A DNA stretch of 61,372 nt, filler included, from Trichosphaerium sp. ATCC 40318 (lineage: Eukaryota; Protista; Tubulinea), in assembly GCA_038496445.1 (NCBI GenBank). It is 3 parts of 3 records of this genome, joined end to end, with 100 filler letters (N's around TTAATTAATTAA, not from the genome) between each part and the next. Parts side by side here need not be neighbours in the genome. Positions count along the whole stretch, not along the records: positions 37,497 to 61,372 come from JALMLS010000425.1; 2 more parts are not named here. One strand, 5' to 3'. Positions 37,497 through 60,483 of the stretch are shown in pieces. The notes beneath the pieces were generated by a model that did no database searches, was not told the DNA's origin, and saw only the letters and a program-made list of their open reading frames with translations. The number at the start of each line of letters is the position of its first letter. Positions within the stretch are counted from its first letter, which is position 1. The position numbers were made by a program, and so were the translations under genes.

Positions 37497-38480
37497 CTCA
37501 ACTATTCATACAAGTCAGTACAATGTAAACTGAAGAACGGCTGGACTACTTACCACTTGGCTCAACTGAATGAGAATTTGTGTTCTCGGATTCTTTTGCT
37601 ACCTGGTCTTCTTTTTTGTTCCAAGCTAGTAGTAATATTAACGTGGCAGCACAACGTCATTCTCGTACTCTGTATAAGTGCTGCTTGAGATCTTCTTTTC
37701 TTCTTTTTCTTCTCCTTCAAGTTTGAGACGTTGGAACGTTTTCGAGCCATCTTATAGTCCAAGTTCCCTTCTGACGCCATTAACTGTGAGAAGGAGTTAG
37801 GGTAAGCTTGTATAAAACGTAAACTAAAGGCTAAGCGTACTCTCTTGGTTTGCAACGCTGCTTCTTCTTCGCTACTTGATTCTCTTTTGGGTATAAGCGG
37901 TTTCTCGTTTCAGATGGTGCGTACGTGTCGGTTGTATCTCGCTCGCTGAACTCAGAATCATCTACCAAGTCACCTTTCTAGAAGCAACATATTAGCACGA
38001 GGCCTCGTATTTCAAGGTTTCGACGAAGGAATCTGAGAAACCGTTACAACAAGGCGTACATAACTCTCTTGAGACATAACCTACAAGGCTATAAGCGTAT
38101 GCATTTAATCAATCGTGAAGTACCTGTGGCGTCTTATTACTTGTCCGTCTAGAATCACATTTTTCGTGTAGATGGTTTGGAATGTGTAGCTTTCCTGAGC
38201 AGAACAAGTCGAGTTTAGATTGCTTACTCTTCGCTAACCCATCTTCCGCTGATGGCTGTGAAAATATGGAATCTTCTGTTCTCACGACAGGTCTTCGTGG
38301 AAGTGTATCCGTCATTGCAAGTCTAGAAGGCTTAGGTTTTATTTTTCTCCTTGCGTATTTCTCATTGTCAACGTGAATGCCACGTCTTTCTCTACATCCA
38401 TTGCACAAAGATTTACGTTGCTTCCAAACAAGTAAAACAACGGCACATGTAAGGGCAGCAGCGAATATACATAAAACACC
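37497..38480 (-). CDS. Exons of a probable single-pass membrane protein with a low-complexity charged tail; upstream exons unresolved
   Basis: The exon GVLCIFAAALTCAVVLLVWKQRK is a TM segment with a basic stop-transfer, followed by K/R/S/E-rich sequence. Confidence 0.4.
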
Positions 38481-43599: not shown

Positions 43600-44679
43600 T
43601 TACATGCTTCTACTTCTTTTTCGTTTCATCATGAGACTTTGATGGTTGCTGAATGTGACTGTCATATGACCTGAATTTGATGTGTGTACTTGATAGTAAT
43701 GCATTGTAGCAAAGCGCTCTAAGCTTGATAATGACTTGAGTGCTTGAAAGCTAGTTTGAGCATAAACTGTTTTCACTTCAACATTTCGTATTTTTTTCCA
43801 ATTGTTGATTATAGGTGATAGAAAATCTCCATAAGTATCACTAAGTGATGTGAACATTCCTCTAAAGTAGAAAGTTTGGATATTAGGAATAGATTTAAGA
43901 AGCCATGAACAAGACTTGCAAACATCAATACCATTAACTTTCAAAGAAAGAAATGTCACATTTTCGAAAACACGATCATCCATCGCTATAAAGTCAAAGC
44001 CATCTGTTTCATCGATACTATTTTCTTCTATTCTAATATATTCAACATGTGGCGATTGTTTTAATATCTCATAAAGGCAATATAGAGCCCTTGTATACTT
44101 AAAGTCTACCCTTGTTAGATTGTTTAATTCGACAGTAGTTACAGCCTTTAAAACTGGTCTTCTAAAGCCACCAGTTAGGTATGAAACACAAAGCCACTGT
44201 AAAGAGTTTGGTGTAGCTATTAAAATATCTTCAAGAGGTATAGAACCAGTGCTGATCATAGCTTCTGGATTTTCAAGTGAAAAATGCGAAAAATTCCGGA
44301 TAGAAAGCTTTACCATTGGTTTGAAGAGCGCGCTTAATGTTGACTTGTATTTTGGGTCTATGTGCGCACAAACGTAGTCTACACACAAAGAAGTGTTGTT
44401 GTAGCTTTCCTCTTCCTTTACAATATCTCTAAGGTTTACAATGCGTTGAGGCTTTAAATAATAGATAGAATACCATTCTTTACATACAATACAAGATTTA
44501 GCACGTGTTCTAAGCGAAAAATAATCCAGGAGAAGATAAGCAATTAATTTGCTTGGTTTTCTCAAAGAAGTATCGTATTGAAGATTTGCAGTTAACCTTG
44601 CAGAATAATACATCGTTTGTGTTATGGGTTGGGGAACATGTACTTGACCTATACTGACTGAGTATGTACGACCTGACAT
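43600..44679 (-). CDS. Intronless F-box-like protein with degenerate LRR-like C-terminus
   Basis: 359-aa ORF. PSKLIAYLLLDYFSLRTRAKSCIVCKEWY matches an F-box pattern. Confidence 0.65.
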   Translation of the reverse strand: MSGRTYSVSIGQVHVPQPITQTMYYSARLTANLQYDTSLRKPSKLIAYLLLDYFSLRTRAKSCIVCKEWYSIYYLKPQRIVNLRDIVKEEESYNNTSLCVDYVCAHIDPKYKSTLSALFKPMVKLSIRNFSHFSLENPEAMISTGSIPLEDILIATPNSLQWLCVSYLTGGFRRPVLKAVTTVELNNLTRVDFKYTRALYCLYEILKQSPHVEYIRIEENSIDETDGFDFIAMDDRVFENVTFLSLKVNGIDVCKSCSWLLKSIPNIQTFYFRGMFTSLSDTYGDFLSPIINNWKKIRNVEVKTVYAQTSFQALKSLSSLERFATMHYYQVHTSNSGHMTVTFSNHQSLMMKRKRSRSM

Positions 44680-45098
44680 AGTGCTATTTTATGCTAGTAC
44701 TTAGCTTATTGTTTAGAACGGCTCCTCATTTGGCATGCTTGTGATTTTCTGATCTTACGATCATGTTAAGTACTCTGATAGTGTCACTAAAGCATAGTTA
44801 CAGAGTCGCCCAAGGGCTACCATCCACGTAGCATTCAAAAAACAACTAAGCACTAGTATTAAATTAAAGCTATGTCAGGTCATATCTAAGGCATTTTTAA
44901 ATACTCTTCAAGGTCATATTCAGTATGTTACTTTATTGTTGACAGATTATACATTCTGAAAAATGTAAGTAGTTAATAGCTATTCCGGATTCAATGTTTA
45001 AGAGATGTAGCTGTACGATATAGTACTATCCTTGTACAAGTCTTTTCACCTGGTCTCTTGACTTCACAAAGAGCTTCTCTGTATTTTGTTTTTCATGT

Positions 45099-45740
45099 TT
45101 AACAATAAAAACTTAGGGGATACTCTCTACATTCTTCGAGTACACCATTGACATAAGTAAATTGCTTCCATAGTTTGCCATTGTAATGCCACTCTTTAAA
45201 CTCTCCTTCAAGCTTTCCATCATTATAGTTACTTATCTTATACACCTTGCCATCTTCATGCCACTCTTTACACTCTCCTTGAAGTTTGTCATTGGCATAG
45301 CGACAAAACTTGCATAGTTGTCCATCCCTGTACCACATTTTGAACTCTCCGTCTAGTTTATCACAAACATAAAAGCAGTGCTTCTTAATATTACCTCCAG
45401 GATACCACTCCTTATACTCACCATTGTATCTACAATTAAAAAACCGGCAATGCAGGAGCAATTGACCTGAATCATACCAACACTTGTAATCTCCATTCGC
45501 TTTACCATGAATGTAACGAATTTGACTTACAATTACAATCCTAGATTTAGAGGTTCTCTTATATCGTGACCACTTGCCGTGTTTGTTCAATTCAATATCA
45601 AACCTTGTTGTAGCCGCTGTGTACCTTGATAATAGAGGCCATTTAATATACGATTCGCCGTCTGTGTCTATGATATCAAGGTGTATCTCAACTGGCAGTT
45701 GAAACAAATAACAGCTATTTTCATGTACTGACGTATTCAT
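45099..45740 (-). CDS. Intronless F-box-like plus MORN-variant (YwqK-like) repeat protein
   Basis: LFQLPVEIHLDII, then repeats of GE(Y/F)K.W(Y/H)..G.L....Y..GKL. Confidence 0.85.
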   Translation of the reverse strand: MNTSVHENSCYLFQLPVEIHLDIIDTDGESYIKWPLLSRYTAATTRFDIELNKHGKWSRYKRTSKSRIVIVSQIRYIHGKANGDYKCWYDSGQLLLHCRFFNCRYNGEYKEWYPGGNIKKHCFYVCDKLDGEFKMWYRDGQLCKFCRYANDKLQGECKEWHEDGKVYKISNYNDGKLEGEFKEWHYNGKLWKQFTYVNGVLEECREYPLSFYC

Positions 45741-46436
45741 CTACTCTCTTTGTCAGTCACGTGACTTTTAAACTAAATTTGTAACAATAATATACCGGTG
45801 AATCAATGTGTCGCTTTGTAAACGATGCCATCGTTGTGGCGGCGTTGATAAACAGAAATTACATTCAAAGAACTATCACTGTATTGTTATTTTTAGATCA
45901 TTTTCATGTAATCACCGCTGTTTGACACGGGCTAATACACTAATTGTGTTTTGCCGATTCATAGAACTCAAATGATAGTATATTGCAATTGTATGTTGTT
46001 TTAGAATGATATCTGTTAAAGTATTTCAAAAACATCAAAGAGACTATGTATAATGTTCGTTTTTATCTTTGCCTTCATGTGTAACCTTCATATCAGTTTT
46101 TAACAGTTGCTGGTGTTCAATGAAACGGAAGTTTCAACCCAATGCAAAGACACTACAACATACTAAGTACTTTACTTTTATTTGTCTACCCGCCAGGACT
46201 GACCCATTCTTAAGCAAGCCTACATTGGTGCTCACTAAGGGTTGACATTTGGAGTTGCACCAAACCAATCTTCCACGTGTATATATGACTAGGACACCAA
46301 CTACTTGATGGACCCAAAGACTCAAAATACAACCTTGTCAAATAAATTCAGACCTCAAAAAAAAATATCAATCAAGAAGGACACACAATAAAATTATGTT
46401 GTTTGCTGAGCGCTAGTGCCCAGAGTAAAATTTAAA

Positions 46437-46655
46437 CACTTTAGGTGTGATATGGCACATTACGCTCTTATACATAATAGCGCTAGTTCAAGGTACTAAA
46501 GCGCTTATTTTTACATAATCAATCACGTGTTTTAGAGTGATTACGCTTTAGGTGAGGTTATTGACGAAATTACGCTATTACACAGAACAGCGCTGGTGCG
46601 AGGTATTTAAAAACGCTATTTTCGCTTATTTGATCTCACGTTTTAGAGTAATTAC
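46437..46655. repeat. Two diverged ~108-bp tandem units upstream of the nuclease-like gene
   Basis: CTTTAGGTG...ATTACGCT...AGCGCT.GT...AGGTA...TTTTAGAGT.ATTAC occurs twice. Confidence 0.7.
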
Positions 46656-46707
46656 ACAGAGACCACAGTCCGAGGGTCGTAAGTATAATATTGGCTCACA
46701 GTTATAA

Positions 46708-48864
46708 ATGGACTTATCACGGACTCGGTCTAGAGTTAAAAAAAAAGTAAGTTCGGACAGGACCCTATTATTATTTGGCACCCTGACATTTTTTTTTTTT
46801 TTTGCAATAAAGGACTGCGCTGGTCCTAACTTTCTACCAGGTAAAAGAAACAAGTCAGCACCAACATCAACTTCCACCAAGAGACGCACAGTGACACCCA
46901 TCAACGAAAACTCTCCAAAGAGAAGGAAGATGGACCCTGAGTTAGATGGTAAGTGTAATCATATAATTTTCGTTTATCAGACTCGGACCCTACAGTAATC
47001 AATCTAATGTGGACACAGGGACCCCAAAACACCCCTGTCTAAAAGGATGTGGACACAACCATAAGGAACACACTCTCCAAAGCGAAATAAGTGGTAGTGA
47101 TAGCACCAAGATGGAAGTGTCTTATTGTGATGATGAAGGTAGGCTTTTTAACTAAATAGATATCTGTAAAAAAAATCAATCTAACAACTAAAAATAGATG
47201 ATTTTGAGCTTCTGTCCCCTTACCTCAAGCGGACTCAGGACCTATCAGAACCAGTAGGTATATATGACAGACACATATACAGGCGGACAGGGGCGCCTAA
47301 AAGTAGACCTGTCCTTCTGTTAACACACCTTACTTACTTTTTGTTTAAATAGTTGTTGATTTTGATGATGACAGAGATGAAGACTCTGCAAAGAAGCCCA
47401 CCAATCTCTATGAGCGCAATAACTGTTACACCAAAGGAAAGGGAATCTATGAGTACGAATTGTTTAAGACAGGGGTGTTTTAGGTGTCCTTTGGTCCTTC
47501 AAAACCTCTTTGTGTGACACAATAATCTTAACATATGTCTTTAGGATTCCACTGTATTTATTGTATTTGTACAGTGTCCTTGCATTTCGAAATGTAGATA
47601 TCAAGGAAGAGTTCTATAAAGAAGGTCCTTGCCTGCATGTTAATGCACCTCTCAAGTTTGGCAGATACTTTCAAATCAAGCAATCATCTAAAGGCTACTA
47701 CAGGTTCTTTATACAATCAAGAAGCGTTCCAATGCACACTCTTTTTACTTTTGGTAAACACTTGGTTTACCCGCCAGAGAAGACCCAGGCTGCCCACATT
47801 TGTGGTAAATGCTGTATATGTCACTCTCCATATTTTGTGTCTGTGGAAGCCAACAACAATCAGAAATATTGCTCTGTTTCGCTTATAAAGGATGATGAAG
47901 GTATGAAGGACCCACAATTTTTTAGTTAGGTCTACTTTTTGGGAAACAAGTCCATCTCCACAACTCAAGCGTACTATATTGACCCACACTGTAGGTGTGT
48001 TGAAGCTAAAGAACAATTGCCTTGGTAGCTGCGCCAATGTTGCCTGCACTTACATTAGCAACATCAAGGAGAATGATTCAGGTCTTGAGGGTGATGCGCT
48101 CTTGGCCAAGTTGGCTGAATTTCCTGAATTTTGCAAATCAGAATATGACCTTCCTCCTGCTCTCATATCTCTCTCTGATGTACCTGGATATACTAGATTG
48201 TACCCATCATGCTTCATCTGCAATACAGGATTCTCTACATTCGGACAAATGGTTAGACATGTTTATGAAGAGCATGCAAATGAATCAGACAAGACCATGT
48301 AAGTTATTTATTATTATTTTTTTTTTGGGACCAGTTTTGTTGAGACAAGGGTGTTTTTATGAGTCCCTGGTCCTTTTGTAGTGTTTTTGAGTCCCTGACC
48401 CTCATTGTAGGTATATTGCTATTCGAAGGCTCAAGAATGCTATTGAAAATGGAGACACTGAAATACACCAAGAGGTTTGTATGAGTGAATACAAGTCATT
48501 TAACTGTCTTTTTGTTGAAAAAAAGGGAATTCCATCAGTTACTCTTACATTTTTGAGAGGCCTTGCCCAAACCCGTAAAAAGACTGCAAGAAGGCGGTTG
48601 TCTAAATTGCTAACAGGGACACAGTGCAAACTCAAGTTTTGTAAGTTTTGTAGTGTACATTGCACTCACTATTACTTTGTTCACTGTGTGTTTGTTAAAG
48701 CATTTCCTGGATATGATATTATTGATGGAGTGGCAACAATGGCTGCAATGAAGACTATTTTAGAACAACCAATACCAACAGACACTGCGCTTTTCATTAA
48801 GGAGTTTAAATGTAAATACTTTGAGATAACTGGTAAAAACCTTGAGGATGCAGACTTTGAGTAA
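46708..48864 (+). CDS. Multi-exon protein with an NLS-like N-terminus, a His-Cys-box (I-PpoI-like) endonuclease domain and a C2H2 zinc finger
   Basis: The spliced product contains PKRRK, HTL...AAHICGKCCICHSPYFVSVEANNNQKYC...CLGSCANVAC and CFICNTGFSTFGQMVRHVYEEH. The start exon is uncertain. Confidence 0.65.
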
Positions 48865-48912
48865 AATACTGCTAAATAAATAAATTTTTTTTTTATGAGT
48901 CCACAGTCTATG

Positions 48913-48923
48913 TAGGGTTAGGG
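48913..48923 (+). repeat. Telomeric seed TAGGGTTAGGG
   Basis: About 50 nt after the stop and AATAAA of the His-Cys gene. Confidence 0.6.
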
Positions 48924-49848
48924 TTTTAAGAGATGGACATTAGTACTTTGTTAGGTTAACTATTTGGCATTGAGTCCTTACAGACCGTACCAATGGACCG
49001 TAACAGTGAAGGAGTGACCTTCCGCCCTGTGCTTTTTATAGTATTATTTGTATGTATTATTTTTTAGGAAGCTCAACTGAGTTCCAGGGTTTGTTGTAGG
49101 AGACGAACCAGGGTCCCAACCTGGTCCAGGCCGCAAAGTTTTACCGGAGACTTACAAGCATACAACCAGGATTGAACCCGCGACTGACTAACCAGTCGGA
49201 CACTCAACCTTGGTCTCAACAACATACTATGATGTGCGCAAATTATAGATGAAGATGTGACATTTCAAGCAGTTTTTGAAGGACTAGACAAGGCTGACAA
49301 TACAAAATCAGACATGGCGAGTAGCAAACAATCAAAAGCTCCACCCTAAAATCCGTTTTTTGTTTCCAGCCTTTTTATTTCAAAAACATTGCAAATCGCA
49401 CCAGTTACCAATAAATCAACTCATGTGGCTACACCAGAGCCACTAATACTGAGCGTCTTTCCTCCCTTCATTTGGGTTTTTGTTAAAGTGTTTGCAGGTC
49501 TCTACAACCTTTTCGACATGTGCCTAGACTCAACTCATAACTATAAAAGATTAGGGAAGTGAGAGTTGTTTATGGTACAACCAAATTTTAAGGCGGAAGC
49601 ATGAAAGTGTTGTGAAGATGATGGGATAACTGTTTATATTTGTTGTGAAAGAAATACATCCTTGCAACTTCTCCGTCTAGACATTAGACCCTTGTGCACC
49701 CACGTTTACTTCAGTTGCGGTTATTCACTATATTTACTGTTCCTGGCAGAACACAAATTGTCTTTGTTAGAGTTTGCAGCGAAAAGTTGCTTGAACACGT
49801 GTTCATTTTTTGTGAGTTTAAAGCACAAAATCTCCTCATAAACGCAAT

Positions 49849-52993: not shown

Positions 52994-54055
52994 TTACTTT
53001 TTACGAAGTAAACGGTCAATAAAATCACCTGAAGTTTCGTCAAAAAACGTTACAGAAGGAACACCCTTCAATGCTTTTATGCCAGCTTCTGTAACTTGTT
53101 TACAATTATCCACAACAATAGTATTAACTCCAGTTAATGCTTTGATACCATCATTTGTAACACTCTCACAATGCCATAGTTTAATTGTATGAACACCAGA
53201 CAATGCTCTGATGCCATCGTCTGTAATATGTGCCATGCTTAAGTCAATTGTATGAACACCTGCTAGTGCCTTGATTCCATCATCTGTAACAGAGTCACAA
53301 TAAAATAGTCTGATTGTATGAACACCAGACAACGCTTTAATACCATCATCTGTAATATGGTTGAAGCTTAAAGAAATTGTATGAACACCCAATAATGCTT
53401 TGATGCCAACATCAGTAACATATTTACAACTGCACAAAGAAATTGTATGAACACCAGCCAATGCCTTAACACCATTGTCTGTAACACTACAGCCATAAAG
53501 TTTAATAGAATGAACACCAGCTAATGCTTTAATACCATCGTCTGTAACATTTGTACATTTGCTTAAGTCAATCGTGTGAACACCAGACAACGCTCTAACG
53601 CCCTTATCTGTCACATTTGCGTTCCATAATAAAATCTTGTGTACTCCAGCAAGTTGTACAAGGTGATCATCAGTAACATACTTACAATTAAAGAGGTCAA
53701 TACAGTTAACAATGTTGAGGTTTGTAAAATCAACCTTAAGCAAGTCCTTTCTCTTTAAACTTAGATCGTATACTCCTTGTAGATACTTTAGATGCTTTTG
53801 CTTGATGGAGAATCGAAGAGTAATACTATTGGTGTGTATGAGGTGTGGTAGTTTTTTGAAGAGCTCTTTCAGCTTTTTTGGTGTTTTAAGGACGATTTCT
53901 CTTGTGTTTACGTATCCCACGTGATTTATTGCGATATTTGATAAATGTTTGGATGTACGAACAACTGAGTGCATAGTTAAGAGCGAGACATATTGTAGAA
54001 TATGAACAATGACTTCAACAGGTATCTCATCAAAGAATGCGCTGTTTTGGTTCAT
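52994..54055 (-). CDS. Intronless F-box plus LRR protein
   Basis: FFDEIPVEVIVHILQYV, then about 10 GVHTI.L..C..VTDDGIKAL repeats. Confidence 0.92.
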   Translation of the reverse strand: MNQNSAFFDEIPVEVIVHILQYVSLLTMHSVVRTSKHLSNIAINHVGYVNTREIVLKTPKKLKELFKKLPHLIHTNSITLRFSIKQKHLKYLQGVYDLSLKRKDLLKVDFTNLNIVNCIDLFNCKYVTDDHLVQLAGVHKILLWNANVTDKGVRALSGVHTIDLSKCTNVTDDGIKALAGVHSIKLYGCSVTDNGVKALAGVHTISLCSCKYVTDVGIKALLGVHTISLSFNHITDDGIKALSGVHTIRLFYCDSVTDDGIKALAGVHTIDLSMAHITDDGIRALSGVHTIKLWHCESVTNDGIKALTGVNTIVVDNCKQVTEAGIKALKGVPSVTFFDETSGDFIDRLLRKK

Positions 54056-54645
54056 TTTTCTGTATACTAGTGAGAAGTAGTTTCTAAGCTAAAGCTGAAC
54101 GGTTTTAGGTAAACTTAAGCTTGCGATTGTATTTTTGTGTTAAGTCAAACCGCTGTACTTGATTTACAACACAACTATTGTCTGTCGCAGGCAAGTTTGC
54201 GGAGAAAACCAAGCCTGCTACCTAGCTTGTGCCTTAATATCACTGTCGCCTTGTTACAATTTGACACTTCTGTCAAATGGTGTAGAACTATCGCAATGTG
54301 CACTATTTGCCTGCCATTAATCACAATGCTGGCATCATAGTACGACGTACGTCCCTTAAGTGATAAACACATTTTTGATGTCAGCTTGAGCATTCCGCCA
54401 AACGCAGACGATGCCTCAAACACTATTTGCCGTTTATGTTTGCTTTAAAAATCAACGTACGCGTATATAACTTACAAGCTATACCTTTACCTACTCCACA
54501 CTAACAGAAGCGCTGTCGCAGCATTCAATAACAAAGCAGTTATATTGACATAAAAACCTCTCACAACAGTACCAACGTTGCTGTGGGCGCTGCTAGGGTC
54601 AATATGTTCGTAAAACTTTTCGGTAGATTTGTTAAATCATGTGAC

Positions 54646-55160
54646 CACATGCAAAAAATCATCGTAAACCATACTATAATAAGACTACTAGTGTTATTCA
54701 TGGTGAGTATAAGCGTTGGTTTGAAACTGGTCAACTTGAAGAACACTGCTATTTTAAAGACAGATTAAAGCATGGAGAGTATAAAGTTTGGTATCGTAAT
54801 GGGCAGTTAAGAATCCATTGTTTCTATGTTAAAGGTATAGCAAAAGGCGAATATAAAAGTTGGAACCTAGATGGTGTAGCTCAACATAGCTTTCGTTTAG
54901 AATGTGTAGAGCTATAAAGGAAATTTGGCAAATGTCAACAAAAAGGGTAGCCTTGGAAACATCATTTTGTTTAAAATCTTATGGAAAGCAAGACCTGACG
55001 TTTTATCCCACGTGCAGAGCCACAATAGAATCTTGTATCAAATAGTACATCACCTTGTGTTTTTTGTTGTACATGTTGTGCTTAGTTTTCGTCAATGGTA
55101 AAAAGTAAGGAGTACCTTAAATCAACACGTGAAGGAGATAAAAGAAAAATATGTATGTGA
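54646..55160 (+). pseudogene. Direct duplicate of the 3' end and downstream flank of the F-box-MORN gene (about 59233-59720)
   Basis: Near-identical sequence, for example aaagacagattaaagcatggagagtataaagtttggtatcgtaatgggcagtta, with no 5' part. Confidence 0.9.
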
Positions 55161-55984
55161 AAAACATAGTAAAGAGCATAATGGTATGCACCAGAATACC
55201 GGTTATAAGTCCTCGACTATTTTAGGAGCTGCACCAGCGCTTTCCAGCTCCAGGGTTGTCGACATGTCAGGAAATTGTATTTGTAAATGAGAGAAAATTC
55301 TGAAGGATCTCTGTGGTGACTAACGGTGAGCACTAGAACACCGTGGTTTATTAGTCTTTCATTACTTAGAAACTGCACCAGCGTTTTCCAGTTTCGTAAG
55401 TCTTAACATGAGTATGTATGTGTACTGAGAGATTATCAAATCGCTACATTGGAAGTAGAACCAAGGGTTTTAAGTTGTGTTTGCCCCTAGCTGGCTTGCC
55501 AGTTCGAGACATTAATCATCACGTGTATTTCCAAAAAAAAAACTCAACACGTGATAACAAGCAAACAAACAAAAAAAAAACCCTTCATCTGTAACGTGCA
55601 GCGTCACCATGTTCAGTATGCATTCTTTCCAAGTATTTCCACGAAGATATTCATAGCGAACTTTGACGAAATACACAATTGTATTCTCTGAATGTATTAC
55701 GTAATTCACTAATAAATAACGCTACTATCCTACAACTAAGGCCACGTCTCTCTTACACGTATTCTCATATTTCGTGTGCCCTTTAACGTTCAACATCACT
55801 TGTGGGACTGTAAAAAAAACCTAAAATCCAAAAATCATTCCCAAAATATTCGTTTTTTCTTCTTGTAGAAAAACCACGTGGTTCCCTGGTCAATCGCAGT
55901 TTTGCCGGCTATAATTACGCTCCCACTTACTTGAAGTTGTTTCTAGGCATATCGCCTGCTACCTGTAGTACTAAGGTGCACAAA

Positions 55985-57436
55985 ATGAACTCAGACAGCG
56001 CATTCTTTGATGAGATCCCCGTTGAAGTCATTATTCATATTCTACGGTTTGCTCCCGTGTTATCTATGCGCTCAGTAGTACATACATCTACATTATTATC
56101 CAATGTCGCGATACAACACTTGGGGTATGACGACAGGAGAAGTATACGAATGAATACAAGAAAAAAGCTTAGACGTCTATTCAAGGAAGCCCCATTCCTC
56201 ATAAAGAAACATACAATTGCCATTGACTACGCTATCAAACAAAAAGACTTAAAGTACCTACAAGATGCTTATGCCCTTGAACTGAAGGAAGTTAACCGAA
56301 AAGTTGATTTTACAGACTTTAATGTAATTGATGGCATTGACTTTTCTTACTGTTATAACGTGACCGATGATCATCTTATACAACTTGCTGGAATACGTAA
56401 AATTAAATTATACAAAGCATTTGTTACAGATGAAGGTGTTAAAGCATTAGCCGGTGTTCGTATGATTGACTTGAGAGAATGTGGTGGTTTCAAGCGTATC
56501 ACAGATGACAGTATTAAGGCTTTAGTTGGTGTTCAAACACTTAATGTACAAGGAACAGATGTTACAGATGATGGTATTAAAACATTGTTACTTGCAGGAA
56601 GCATTCACTCGATTGATATTAGTAATTGTAGGAACATAACAGATGGTTGTATTAAGGCGCTAGCACAAGCACGTGTTCATACCATTTCTTTAGGGCATTT
56701 GAAGGTTACAGAGGAATCTATCAAAGCACTAGGTGTAGCTGGAGTTCATACGATTAATCTTTGTAGCACAAATGTTACAGATGATGGTGTTAAATCATTT
56801 GCTGGCATTCACAATATTGATTTATCGAACTGTGATCTTGTTACAGATGAAGGTGTTAAAGCATTATCTGGTGTTCATACAATTAATTTAAATAATTGCA
56901 AGCGTATTACTGATGAAGGTGTGAGTGCATTGGGAGGTGTGCATGTAATTGATTTATGTGGTTGTTTTCGAATAACAGATGAAGGTGTTAAACCCCTAGC
57001 TGGTGTTCATACAATTAGTCTATCATATACAAAAGTTACAGATACTGGCATCAAGGCTTTGGGTGGTGTTCACACTATTCGTCTCTGGTATTGCAATGTG
57101 ACAGATGATGGTATTAAAGCACTGGCAGGCGTTCATACAATTGACTTGGGTGATTGTACTAAGATAACAGACGATGGAATTAAAGTATTAGCTGGAGTTT
57201 ACTCAATTAACTTGAAAGGCTGTACCCTTGTAACAGACAAAGGGGTTAAAGCTTTAGCTGGTGTTCACGAGATAGACGTGTCCTACTGTAATAATATTAC
57301 AGATGATGGGATAAAGGCACTGGCGGGTGTATATGCAATCAATATAACGAGTTGTATGCTTGTTACAAAAAAAGGCATCAAGGCTTTAGGTGATGCACGA
57401 ATAGTACGAAATTTGGGCGATTTGTTAAACTACTAA
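55985..57436 (+). CDS. Intronless F-box plus LRR protein, inverted paralogue of 52994-54055
   Basis: Starts MNSDSAFFDEIPVEVIIHIL and has about 15 LRRs of the same family. Confidence 0.92.
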   Translation: MNSDSAFFDEIPVEVIIHILRFAPVLSMRSVVHTSTLLSNVAIQHLGYDDRRSIRMNTRKKLRRLFKEAPFLIKKHTIAIDYAIKQKDLKYLQDAYALELKEVNRKVDFTDFNVIDGIDFSYCYNVTDDHLIQLAGIRKIKLYKAFVTDEGVKALAGVRMIDLRECGGFKRITDDSIKALVGVQTLNVQGTDVTDDGIKTLLLAGSIHSIDISNCRNITDGCIKALAQARVHTISLGHLKVTEESIKALGVAGVHTINLCSTNVTDDGVKSFAGIHNIDLSNCDLVTDEGVKALSGVHTINLNNCKRITDEGVSALGGVHVIDLCGCFRITDEGVKPLAGVHTISLSYTKVTDTGIKALGGVHTIRLWYCNVTDDGIKALAGVHTIDLGDCTKITDDGIKVLAGVYSINLKGCTLVTDKGVKALAGVHEIDVSYCNNITDDGIKALAGVYAINITSCMLVTKKGIKALGDARIVRNLGDLLNY

Positions 57437-57527
57437 TGTTAGTATGTTAACAAAAATAAAAGTAGTGTTACATGAATTTAAGTGTTTGTTGCGCACAGTA
57501 TGTTAATTCACACGAGTACAAAGCATA

Positions 57528-58082
57528 CACCTTGCTGTGTCTTGAACTAAACCCTTGAATACCATTGGTGTAAAAGAAATTGAACAACTTTGAGGACCAC
57601 AGTGATTTGTTTCAAATTTAGGGATTGTATTAATGCCCTTCCGTATCCACAAAATGGTTTATTTTGTGCGGTACTGGCAACTGGTCACTCACAAATCCAA
57701 ATCTTGACGGTTTGCGGCAAAAAAAGCGATATTTGTCTACCGGCAGCACTTTATGTGTGTAGTATTGCCAGATTGTCTACCTTAGAGAAGTACTAATGAT
57801 GGTTTTTTAATAACAACCTGCAAGCGCTATCAAATTTGTATGTGTGGGACTTGTGGGCGTAAGTCAATCCGTCAACTCGCAAACTTCTCGACCGTTTACT
57901 GTCAGGCAAATAGTATGAATAGTAATGAATGAATCTTTTTACTCATGAATATGTAAGGAAGTGGTCTTGACCGCCTTTTGGCGTAGCTGTAAGCTAGACT
58001 TCCTTACAAATACTGGCTGTATTTGAATATACGTAGTATTCATGAGTAACGGAAGGGCATTAGTGTGTATTCAGGCGAGGTG
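57528..58082 (+). ncRNA. Candidate large structured non-coding RNA of unknown class
   Basis: Nested long-range helices of 8, 8, 14, 13 and 11 bp plus a four-way junction. G-U pairs favour the plus strand. Confidence 0.55.
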
Positions 58083-58344
58083 CAAGATATTGTAACTAAA
58101 ACATGGCAGAAAGTGAGTAGAGCTTTGATAAGAATAACAGATTGTGATATTTGGAAGTATAGTCAAGAACTCACAAGATCGAATTCTTAGTTGTCTGATG
58201 GCTTTGTGTTGAATGGCTTGCTTGTATCAGAAGCAATCCCGGTTATTGATATTAGTACTACACTAACTACAAGTCACGTGGAGAATCAAACAGGAAACTT
58301 GTTGACCTTTAAGATTTATTGTTTTACTAAACGTTGTACGCAAT

Positions 58345-59485
58345 ATGAGCGATAGTAATACAAGTGAATCTTCCTTAAACGAACGCAAACAAGACTCAAC
58401 ATTGCTTTGTTTACCACTAGAGATCCAACATATGATTTTAAACACAGATTACTACGCCTTTATCAATTGGCCTCTTCTTTGTTTTCAAGCGGCGGAAACG
58501 AGCAGATTTAATGCAAATATGGACAAACACGGAACGTTTAGAAAATTCATGGCCGATGGAGCGAAACACGTTGAAACCAAGTTCAAAAATGGTACCACAG
58601 CTGGTTGGGAGCGTAAGTGGCACCCAAACGGCCAATTAGCAGTCGAACGGTACAACAGACATGGTAAAAGAAGAAACAAAGGCTATCTCTATCACTACTG
58701 TAAATGGTATCCATCTGGAGCTAAATACAAGGAAGGGTTCTACAAACAGGGCGTAAAACATGGCAGATTCTCAGTTTTTCAAGCAAATGGATCATTGAGA
58801 ACAACAGGAATTTACAACAAAGGTAGAAAGAATGGTGAATTTTTGACTTACTCAGTGCATGATGGACAGATTCTAGAGTCTTGCTTTTACAAACAAGGTC
58901 AAAAAGACGGGTTATTGACCGTTTATAGTCATTGATAGTTATCAAATGAAGGAAGGAAGGATTTGTGGAGAGTGCAAGAAAATTAGGAAAAAAACCAATC
59001 AACTTGTTGTCCATTGTTTTGCAATGAACACAGGTTGTTGCCATGAAAATGTCCATAGATTTCAACTATACCATGGAGAGTATAAGAAATATGATGATTC
59101 AGGTAATCTAAGGAAGCATTGTTGGTTTAACAAGGGTGAGCCTGAAGGAGACTATATTTTATACAGATATGGCTTAATGAAAGTCAAGTATTCCTACAAG
59201 TGTTTTGTTGATACACCTGGTTATATACCACGTGCAAAAAATCATCGTAAACAATACTATAATAGGACTACTAGTGTTAGACATGGCGAGTATAAGCTTT
59301 GGTATGAAAATGGTCAACTTCAAGAACACTGCTTTTTTAAAGACAGATTAAAGCATGGAGAGTATAAAGTTTGGTATCGTAATGGGCAGTTACAAATCCA
59401 TTGTTTCTATGTTAAAGGTATAGAAAAAGGTGAATATAAAAGTTGGAACCAAGATGGTGTATTAGCTCAACATAGCTTTCTTTGA
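58345..59485 (+). pseudogene. F-box-like plus MORN-variant repeat gene split by a frameshift near 58930
   Basis: LLCLPLEIQHMIL and MORN-variant repeats continue across ORFs 58345-58935 and 58946-59485. Paralogue of 45099-45740. Confidence 0.75.
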
Positions 59486-60483
59486 ACCTTGGAAAATGTA
59501 ACAAAAAGGGTAGCCTTGGAAACATCATTTTGTTTAAAATCTTATGGAAAGCAAGACAGTGCACGTTTTATCCCACGTGCAGAGCCATTATAGAATCTTG
59601 TATCAAATAGTACATAATCTTGCGTTTTTTTTTGTTGTACATGTTGTGCTTAGTTTTCGTCAATGGTAAAAAGTAAGGAGTACCTTAAATCAACACGTGA
59701 ACGAGGTAAAGAAAAATATGTCGTGGTTTCCTTGGATTGTTGGAACATCGATTTCAAGTTCTGCCTTGTATGAGGTCTATAATGCTCTGTACTTGGTTTA
59801 GTAATTGTTGTTCTCCTTTAATTTCATTGTATACTTCCGCATTGGTGTTGGAGAAATAATGCCTATTCTGTTAAGGATTTTCTGTATCCTGAAGTTGCTC
59901 GTTCATTAAACACGATAAAACAAAAGAATAAAATAAGAAACGACGTCCACAATAAGTTAAACTAAACAGAATCTAGCTTTAGTTACGTGGCCTGCTCCAA
60001 AGCTATTATTTTTGTACCTTCTCCAGACCACTAAATATAAAGGTATACAATGCAAATATAACCAATTTATCTAATAGCGTAAACGTTGTCTCAGTCTTGA
60101 AATAAAAGTTCAAAAAAAACAGTTCAAGTCTGTCAGAAATCTGCTTGTGTAATCTCCTCTGAGTTACATCTCTTAATTGGCGTTATAGTAACCATTCCTT
60201 GGCGGTGAGCGTTATTCTATGCACTGGCTGACACCCTCAACAAAAATAGAATTCAGCAAAAAAAAGTAGAATAAAAACACAACATGGCTGTTGACTATCA
60301 CGGGATGTAGCTTTACAGCACGTGATCAGTGTAGGTTAAATTTGATTTTGTTTGAAGACCAATAATTAAGAAACTTGCCGGCACGTGATAGTCAACAAAA
60401 ATGTTTTGTTTTTTCACATTCTGGTCTACCTTTTTTTTTTGTGCTAATTTCTATTTTTGTTGAGGACACAAGAGAGCCACAAA

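Follow-up and report, generated by a model that had tools for sequence, protein, structure and literature searches.

To our knowledge, nearly all described His-Cys box endonucleases reside in group I introns of nuclear ribosomal DNA (rDNA), the nuclease of the KolobokP transposons of animals being the one described exception. The homing endonuclease genes (HEGs) of rDNA (I-PpoI, I-DirI, I-NaaI and I-DsqI; Pfam PF05551; His-Me finger group 12) are the nearest kin of a spliced gene that we describe here from Trichosphaerium sp. ATCC 40318 (assembly GCA_038496445.1). It lies in a stretch of 61,372 nt, filler included, that joins three parts and to which all positions refer (the window). The gene's own piece spans positions 37497–61372 (JALMLS010000425.1, ~24 kb, 33–42% GC and eukaryotic), and eight coding exons on its + strand (46708–48864) add up to 1539 nt, or 512 amino acids (aa), with consistent phases throughout. 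It is probably a nuclear gene that stands on its own, is interrupted by spliceosomal introns and encodes ~510 aa, with a central domain that descends from the His-Cys box homing endonucleases but has diverged far from them.

This domain spans exon 6 and the first part of exon 7. Its hallmark residues follow one another in the same order and at matching distances as in rDNA HEGs (in I-PpoI numbering C41, the GY.R strand, H78, H98-x-C100, C105-x2-P108, E114, N119 and C125), its best single matches sit in large-subunit (LSU) or small-subunit (SSU) rDNA, and its predicted fold matches that of I-PpoI (below). Some rDNA HEGs themselves hold small spliceosomal introns (PMC9548176). Unlike those genes, however, this one stands outside rDNA and group I introns, encodes ~512 aa rather than ~160–250 aa, carries ~7 introns, a C2H2 finger and added domains, has S97, N107 and H110 replaced, and falls below Pfam detection. 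KolobokP provides a second comparison, since its nuclease is likewise an I-PpoI-group enzyme found outside rDNA in a eukaryotic nuclear genome, and the HHpred matches of the KolobokP protein, I-PpoI (1A73) and I-HmuI (1U3E), are the same two structures that are neighbours of exon 6 (PMC9587614). KolobokP nucleases retain S97, H110 and E114, whereas exon 6 retains only E114 of these.

Exon 6 and the His-Cys box family

I-PpoI-group nucleases are encoded by KolobokP transposons (Kojima and Bao 2022, PMC9587614), and the supplementary alignment of that study yields the family signature SHLC[GH]N..C..P.HL..E....N..R..C. Scanning metagenome contigs with the fixed-spacing core of this published signature returned 120 loci of two types, a bacterial/phage HNH_3-type and a eukaryote-type with E114 and C125. 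The eukaryote-type segments (alignment A1) are a valid reference set because 45/45 match PF05551, their profile matches the I-PpoI chains in the PDB at E 7.5e-19, and Rfam locates several members in SSU or LSU rDNA of eukaryotes, accompanied by group I or GIR1 ribozymes.

By sequence comparison, exon 6 is statistically related to these verified PF05551 family members. It scores 18.6 bits against a custom hidden Markov model (HMM) of all members, 19.0 bits against the eukaryote-type profile (E 8.5e-8 at Z=1, that is, as a single comparison) and 16.1 bits against the bacterial-type profile, with E ~1e-7 overall. The best of 5000 composition-preserving shuffles of exon 6 reach 9.4–12.0 bits, and the best of the other 239 open reading frames (ORFs) in the piece reaches 5.6 bits against the family profiles. 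Both halves of the exon contribute to the score: that of the first 70 residues, which lie outside the His-Cys motif, is equalled by 0–2/3000 shuffles, and that of the last 38 residues is reached by 5/3000 (eukaryote-type profile). Comparison of A1 with exon 6 by hhalign gave 75.6% probability (E 2.4e-5, 69 columns), as against 0.6% and 0.3% for two control exons of this gene that are likewise Cys-rich. The top single relative is an HEG inside LSU rDNA (L115, phmmer E 2.3e-6); also among the best are members next to 5.8S or in SSU rDNA (L081, L023) and one in an LSU group I intron (L021). Kinship with I-PpoI and the His-Cys box, which an earlier note had proposed from the sequence, is thus upheld by custom profiles, shuffles and hhalign, with Pfam itself blind to it.

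Residues were mapped in a MAFFT alignment (A2) of exon 6 with 74 family members (75 sequences). Exon 6 residues and their I-PpoI equivalents are as follows.

C19 = C41: 47630–47632, + strand, column at least 90% conserved
A73 = S97: changed
H74 = H98, general base: 47795–47797, + strand, invariant column
C76 = C100: same residue in all 75 sequences
K78 = N102: substituted
C82 = C105: invariant column
S84 = N107: substituted
P85 = P108: invariant column
F87 = H110: loss of a Zn ligand
E91 = E114: at the family's distance from C105
N93 = N119, metal-binding Asn: 47852–47854, + strand, column at least 90% conserved, preceded by a 3-residue deletion
K97 = R122: changed
C99 = C125: 47870–47872, + strand, kept

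Both MAFFT and HMMER place N93 in the N119 column, and the C41...H78...H98 spacing is conserved to within 2 residues. Family positions are occupied by the general-base His, E114, the metal-binding Asn and five Cys. The mapping bears out the proposal that the general-base His and the metal-binding Asn are kept and that one Zn-ligand His is missing, the lost ligand being His110, now Phe. The first zinc site (C41, C100, C105, H110) is accordingly incomplete, with C19, C76 and C82 in place and Phe87 at the position of H110. A one-residue insertion (CCIC) brings two extra Cys, C79 and C80, which may replace His110 as a zinc ligand. At the second site (C125, C132, H134, C138), C99 corresponds to C125, and three Cys of exon 7 follow after a longer spacer; these could complete the site.

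Three loci from the metagenome scan are observations in their own right. L007 (1326–1534) and L069 (1014–1222) are twin-ribozyme rDNA introns in which a GIR1 branching ribozyme lies beside a His-Cys HEG. L027 (5992–6357) holds a small PF05551 nuclease ORF on a 7-kb contig in which Rfam reported no rDNA, and is possibly a further free-standing or element-borne member.

Gene structure and transcripts

The gene model comes from three-frame reading of the sequence, with three boundaries adjusted by hand from intron ends. Its parts, all on the + strand, are listed below; contigs are assemblies of public runs, two of which are designated X1 and X2, and P0001 is a 167-aa MMETSP transcript ORF.

46400–46707: 5′ leader, with exons from 46400 or before to 46492, 46552–46602 and 46647 onward; GT..AG joints in X1 and X2 contigs
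46493–46551 (59 nt) and 46603–46646 (44 nt): leader mini-introns, spliced out in public contigs
46708–46746: exon 1, uncertain; open frame from the ATG at 46708, GTAAGT at 46747
46813–46948: exon 2, basic and Ser/Thr-rich; 3′ junction in X1 and X2 contigs
47019–47138: exon 3, small Cys/His cluster (CLKGCGHNHKEH); 5′ junction in contigs
47198–47257: exon 4, predicted only, from GT-AG boundaries and phase continuity
47353–47452: exon 5, predicted only, from GT-AG boundaries and phase continuity; holds an acidic stretch
47575–47900: exon 6, predicted; divergent His-Cys box / His-Me finger core, encoding ...HTLFTFGKHLVYPPEKTQAAHICGKCCICHSPYFVSVEANNNQKYC...
47995–48298: exon 7, beginning ...NNCLGSCANVAC; 3′ junction in a contig and in P0001
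48411–48864: exon 8, last coding exon, 150 aa, Cys-rich; P0001 gapless, crossed by three contigs
48862–48864: stop codon TAA, in exon 8
48875–48884: two overlapping AATAAA, poly(A)-signal-like, from direct sequence reading

Transcription and splicing of the gene are shown for its 5′ and 3′ parts at least. Contigs from two public runs (X1, X2) cross the junction of exons 2 and 3 (46948/47019), and that of exons 7 and 8 (48298/48411) is crossed by one public contig and by P0001, which is 100% identical to the window, was the sole return of a word search with exon 8, and reads ...VRHVYEEHANESDKT followed by MYIAIRR... across the junction. The claim of spliceosomal introns is thereby confirmed in public contigs and in P0001, and the match to P0001 marks the organism as a marine microbial eukaryote represented in MMETSP. 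Since P0001 crosses it without a gap, the final 454 nt of the coding sequence form one exon; two introns considered within it, at 48475–48525 and 48642–48701, were rejected, as P0001 and three contigs run through both. Exon 6 had been placed at ~47575–47899, of which the start holds and the end moves to 47900, and another acceptor in frame, at 47544, could be used instead. Neither the start codon nor the first small intron (46747–46812) is certain, with contigs unspliced over 46747–46783 and an alternative in-frame ATG at 46930.

The leader is itself repetitive, positions 46456–46660 comprising two tandem units of ~111 nt, each with its own mini-intron. Contigs of two runs track the leader to 46783 and then enter one common, different sequence, and one of them has AGTT in place of 46679–46738. 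These divergent contigs suggest at least one further locus that shares the leader.

The motifs quoted in the earlier note (the His/Cys stretch, CLGSCANVAC, the C2H2 finger, PKRRK, and AATAAA followed by TAGGGTTAGGGTT) were all recovered. Outside the nuclease core, PKRRK, which resembles a nuclear localization signal (NLS), is encoded at 46915–46929 in exon 2, and CLGSCANVAC (48018–48047, exon 7) adds three Cys beyond exon 6. The C2H2 finger of exon 7 (48207–48275; C-x2-C-x3-F-x5-M-x2-H-x4-H) fits the classical pattern (C-x2-4-C-x3-F-x5-L-x2-H-x3-5-H) exactly, but for Met in the place of Leu. Against Pfam zf-C2H2 it scores 14 bits (E 0.07), under the 25-bit cut-off, and such a weak score is usual for a single C2H2 finger. 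No family could be assigned to exon 8 by Pfam or, with P0001 as query, in the ESM Atlas.

Predicted fold, activity and competing readings

AlphaFold run with family alignment A2 models exon 6 with a pLDDT (predicted local distance difference test) of 70.4 and core blocks at 77–87, as three N-terminal strands, one helix and two hairpin strands. VIA-align superposes the model on I-PpoI at Z 5.9–6.4 (root-mean-square deviation, rmsd, 3.6–4.0 Å, 91–94 residues) and on MH1 at Z 3.9. Among 48,161 PDB representatives aligned, only I-HmuI (Z 6.4, rmsd 3.0 Å, 80 residues) and I-PpoI (Z 6.1, rmsd 3.6 Å, 92 residues) reach Z ≥5, followed by NFIC (Z 3.1), Smad4 MH1 (Z 3.0) and then noise. I-HmuI, the top structural representative, belongs with HNH_3 to the phage and bacterial group 2, which resembles exon 6 in its H-x-C...C-x-N-P-x-H-L...N core, and the bacterial-type profile does give 16 bits. 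Group 2, however, is without E114 and C125, both present in exon 6, for which the eukaryote-type profile scores higher and the best matches are all eukaryote-type.

The proposed history is that the endonuclease gene, descended from those of rDNA group I introns (I-PpoI, PF05551), would have left its rDNA intron, gained spliceosomal introns and become part of a larger protein, with the basic NLS-like region upstream and the C2H2 finger and Cys-rich C-terminal domain downstream. After leaving, it may have been domesticated by the host or have persisted as a free-standing selfish gene. The protein would enter the nucleus and bind DNA with both its His-Me domain and its finger, and in the one-metal His-Me mechanism the His would activate water and the Asn would hold Mg2+. 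The kept His98, Glu114 and Asn119 speak for a nuclease that is still active, and the predicted protein most likely still cuts DNA by this mechanism. The fuller reading, in which it is an active, nuclear-targeted, site-specific endonuclease escaped from an rDNA intron and serving either programmed breaks of the host or free-standing homing, we put forward tentatively.

Several observations weigh against nuclease descent or activity. General searches with exon 6 found no nuclease: exon-wise Pfam reported no nuclease family, and PF05551 went unreported even at E up to 10; phmmer against PDB sequences returned nothing relevant and missed I-PpoI; and HMMER against 1.84 billion representative proteins gave 0 matches at E ≤ 1e-3. 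From a single sequence, AlphaFold reached a pLDDT of 35, which is unusable, and the structural match to I-PpoI is one of compatibility and partly circular, because the input alignment of the better model was the family itself. Foldseek ranks Smad MH1, I-PpoI and NFI at the top, all weakly (E ~0.4), and the model lacks the final helix of the beta-beta-alpha motif, with pLDDT <50 at residues 99–108. Five family-invariant residues are altered (S97A, N102K, N107S, H110F, R122K), and 3 residues are deleted ahead of the putative metal-binding Asn. At the RNA level, no public contig covers 47070–48148 and no read covers exon 6, which is thus not seen directly in RNA, and the sole assembled transcript form across the middle of the gene, one X1 contig, joins 47059 to 48164, which leaves out the nuclease exon and changes the frame. 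The join skips 1104 nt with ends CA..CT and 4 nt of shared letters, and could come from a paralogue with an internal deletion, from non-canonical splicing or from template switching as an artefact. It also accounts for the P0001 ORF beginning at an internal Met, the first in frame after the frame-shifting join.

Three further searches with exon 6 were also empty: a word-index search of 5.8 billion clusters found nothing, the ESM Atlas gave no usable lead, and a direct related-locus search found no relatives in metagenome and viral contigs. The negative Pfam, PDB and 1.84-billion-protein searches fit an exon 6 that is an unrelated Cys-rich, zinc-binding exon resembling the motif by chance, and it is also true that the exon was chosen by eye for the motif, that the profile members were motif-selected and that the AlphaFold model leans on the family alignment. 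We nonetheless regard chance resemblance as highly unlikely. The profile score stands 7–10 bits over the best of the 5000 shuffles and 13 bits over all other ORFs, the N-terminal 70 residues beyond the motif still outscore nearly all shuffles, the C41...H78...H98 spacing is kept, and the control Cys-rich exons stay below 1% in hhalign.

The altered neighbours of the active site and the deletion make a DNA-binding-only derivative the main rival to an active enzyme. Smad MH1 and NFI are His-Me folds turned into DNA-binding transcription-factor modules, and exon 6 could have the same ancestry as proposed above and yet be catalytically dead, now serving only, together with the C2H2 finger, to bind specific DNA sequences. 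The changes S97A, N107S and H110F beside the active site and the deletion before the Asn suit this account, as do the lack of a confidently modelled metal-ligand helix, the position of MH1 and NFI as next structural neighbours, and the fusion to a C2H2 finger and an NLS-like stretch, which would suit a transcription-factor-like protein. MH1 and NFI are nuclear and use a His-Me fold with structural zinc for DNA recognition, as the protein of exon 6 may do. Their Z values (3.0–3.9), however, are half those of the nucleases (6.1–6.4), Pfam reported neither MH1 nor NFI in the exon-wise search, and H98, E114 and N119 are all kept in both the MAFFT and HMMER alignments, so that exon 6 retains the catalytic His and Asn. 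We judge a dead domain rather unlikely. Of the beta-beta-alpha-metal fold anticipated for exon 6, both strands are predicted and the helix is not, in a model that leans on the family alignment.

Genomic surroundings and implications

No rRNA, tRNA, group I intron or any other Rfam family was reported in 37497–61372 by Rfam and ARAGORN, in keeping with the description of the gene as free-standing rather than resident in rDNA. ORF and Pfam searches found no transposase, integrase or reverse transcriptase ORF in ~9 kb upstream and ~12 kb downstream, and no long direct or inverted repeats were found flanking the gene. Because mobile-element ORFs and long flanking repeats are both missing, the gene is free-standing as far as the 24 kb shows. 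A transposon context was rejected on the same grounds, and the suggestion of an element-borne origin gained no support, as neither transposase nor terminal repeats lie nearby.

The nuclease gene could still be part of a mobile element, a KolobokP-like DNA transposon or another, rather than a host gene. KolobokP transposons do bear an I-PpoI-group nuclease (PMC9587614), the contigs that diverge after 46783 and the 1104-nt-deleted contig hint at more copies, and the GGWCC richness of 46400–49300, the short repeats shared by introns and an exact 14-nt direct repeat at 46022 and 49376 might be read as traces of an element. However, the adjacent DDD/E Kolobok transposase and KolobokP's long terminal direct repeats were not found in the gene's piece, the KolobokP nuclease is small, unlike a multi-domain product of 512 aa from a gene with ~7 introns, and a 14-nt repeat in two copies may be chance. 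We therefore consider an element improbable and the free-standing gene the better account.

The locus has a distinctive repeat content. The palindromic word GGWCC is 10–40x richer in 46400–49300 than in the rest of 37497–61372 and densest in introns (GGACC at 2.8 per kb in the locus vs 0.24 elsewhere, GGTCC at 2.1 vs 0.05). A ~40-nt element (GACARGGGTGTTTT then GTCC..GGTCC) is common to introns 5 and 7 and the boundary of intron 2 and exon 3. Its copies are as follows.

47026–47039: 14-mer of the element, − strand, mismatch-free
47468–47481: 14-mer, + strand, mismatch-free
48344–48357: 14-mer, + strand, mismatch-free
47006–47058, 47458–47510 and 48334–48386: wider copies of the element

At ≤2 mismatches the 14-mer has 4 matches vs 0.4 expected, and 4 were reached in 0/100 shuffles. 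The inverted copy, approximately the first 35 nt of exon 3, provides the acceptor and first codons of that exon, and the element has the look of a short repeat, dispersed or introner-like. A separate 28-nt unit (TTTATGAGTCCCTGACCC...) is tandemly doubled in intron 7 (48356–48410), and the 3′ untranslated region holds a third copy, less exact (48889–48910), just ahead of a telomere-like 13-mer.

This 13-mer, TAGGGTTAGGGTT (48913–48925, + strand, ~2.2 repeat units), is the only match in the window. It had prompted the proposal that the nuclease possibly makes breaks healed with TTAGGG, a role that we set aside as unsupported, since it would rest on one weakly significant string: there is one match at ≤1 mismatch, at least one match occurs in 4/100 shuffles, and the string lies away from any contig end. 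It may belong to a short G/T-rich repeat that the introns contain too. A tRNA-derived SINE (short interspersed nuclear element) downstream, considered because of a B-box-like GGTTCAATCC on the − strand near 49170, was likewise rejected, being without ARAGORN or Rfam support.

Intronless genes identified by ORF and Pfam searches surround the nuclease gene.

45099–45740, − strand: MORN_2-repeat gene
52994–54055, − strand: F-box/LRR_6 gene
55931–57436, + strand: F-box/LRR_6 gene
58345–58935, + strand: MORN_2-repeat gene
58946–59485, + strand: MORN_2-repeat gene

The MORN and F-box/LRR genes are two expanded families, and their intronless cluster (43600–45740, 52994–59485) adjoins a gene with ~7 introns. 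The closest relatives of the MORN neighbour protein are metagenomic YwqK-like proteins, and giant viruses and amoeba-associated bacteria typically carry MORN and F-box/LRR families. A direct repeat of ~505 bp (54644–55148 and 59227–59716, 4.57 kb apart, 92–100% identity in blocks) flanks one F-box/LRR gene and two MORN genes, and looks like a segmental duplication of the 3′ end of a MORN gene and the DNA downstream.

A transcribed multi-exon protist gene in which a His-Cys domain is joined to a zinc finger would be an unusual example of a homing endonuclease that left its intron and was rebuilt as an ordinary nuclear gene, a move of the His-Me fold comparable to those of Smad MH1 and NFI. Such genes go unnoticed by Pfam and by sequence searches on a scale of billions, and only a purpose-built family profile brings them up; if the protein is indeed an active nuclease, its relatives are too diverged for any sequence database search to find. 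Should it cut DNA, it would be a candidate for a rare-cutting enzyme of new specificity and new architecture.

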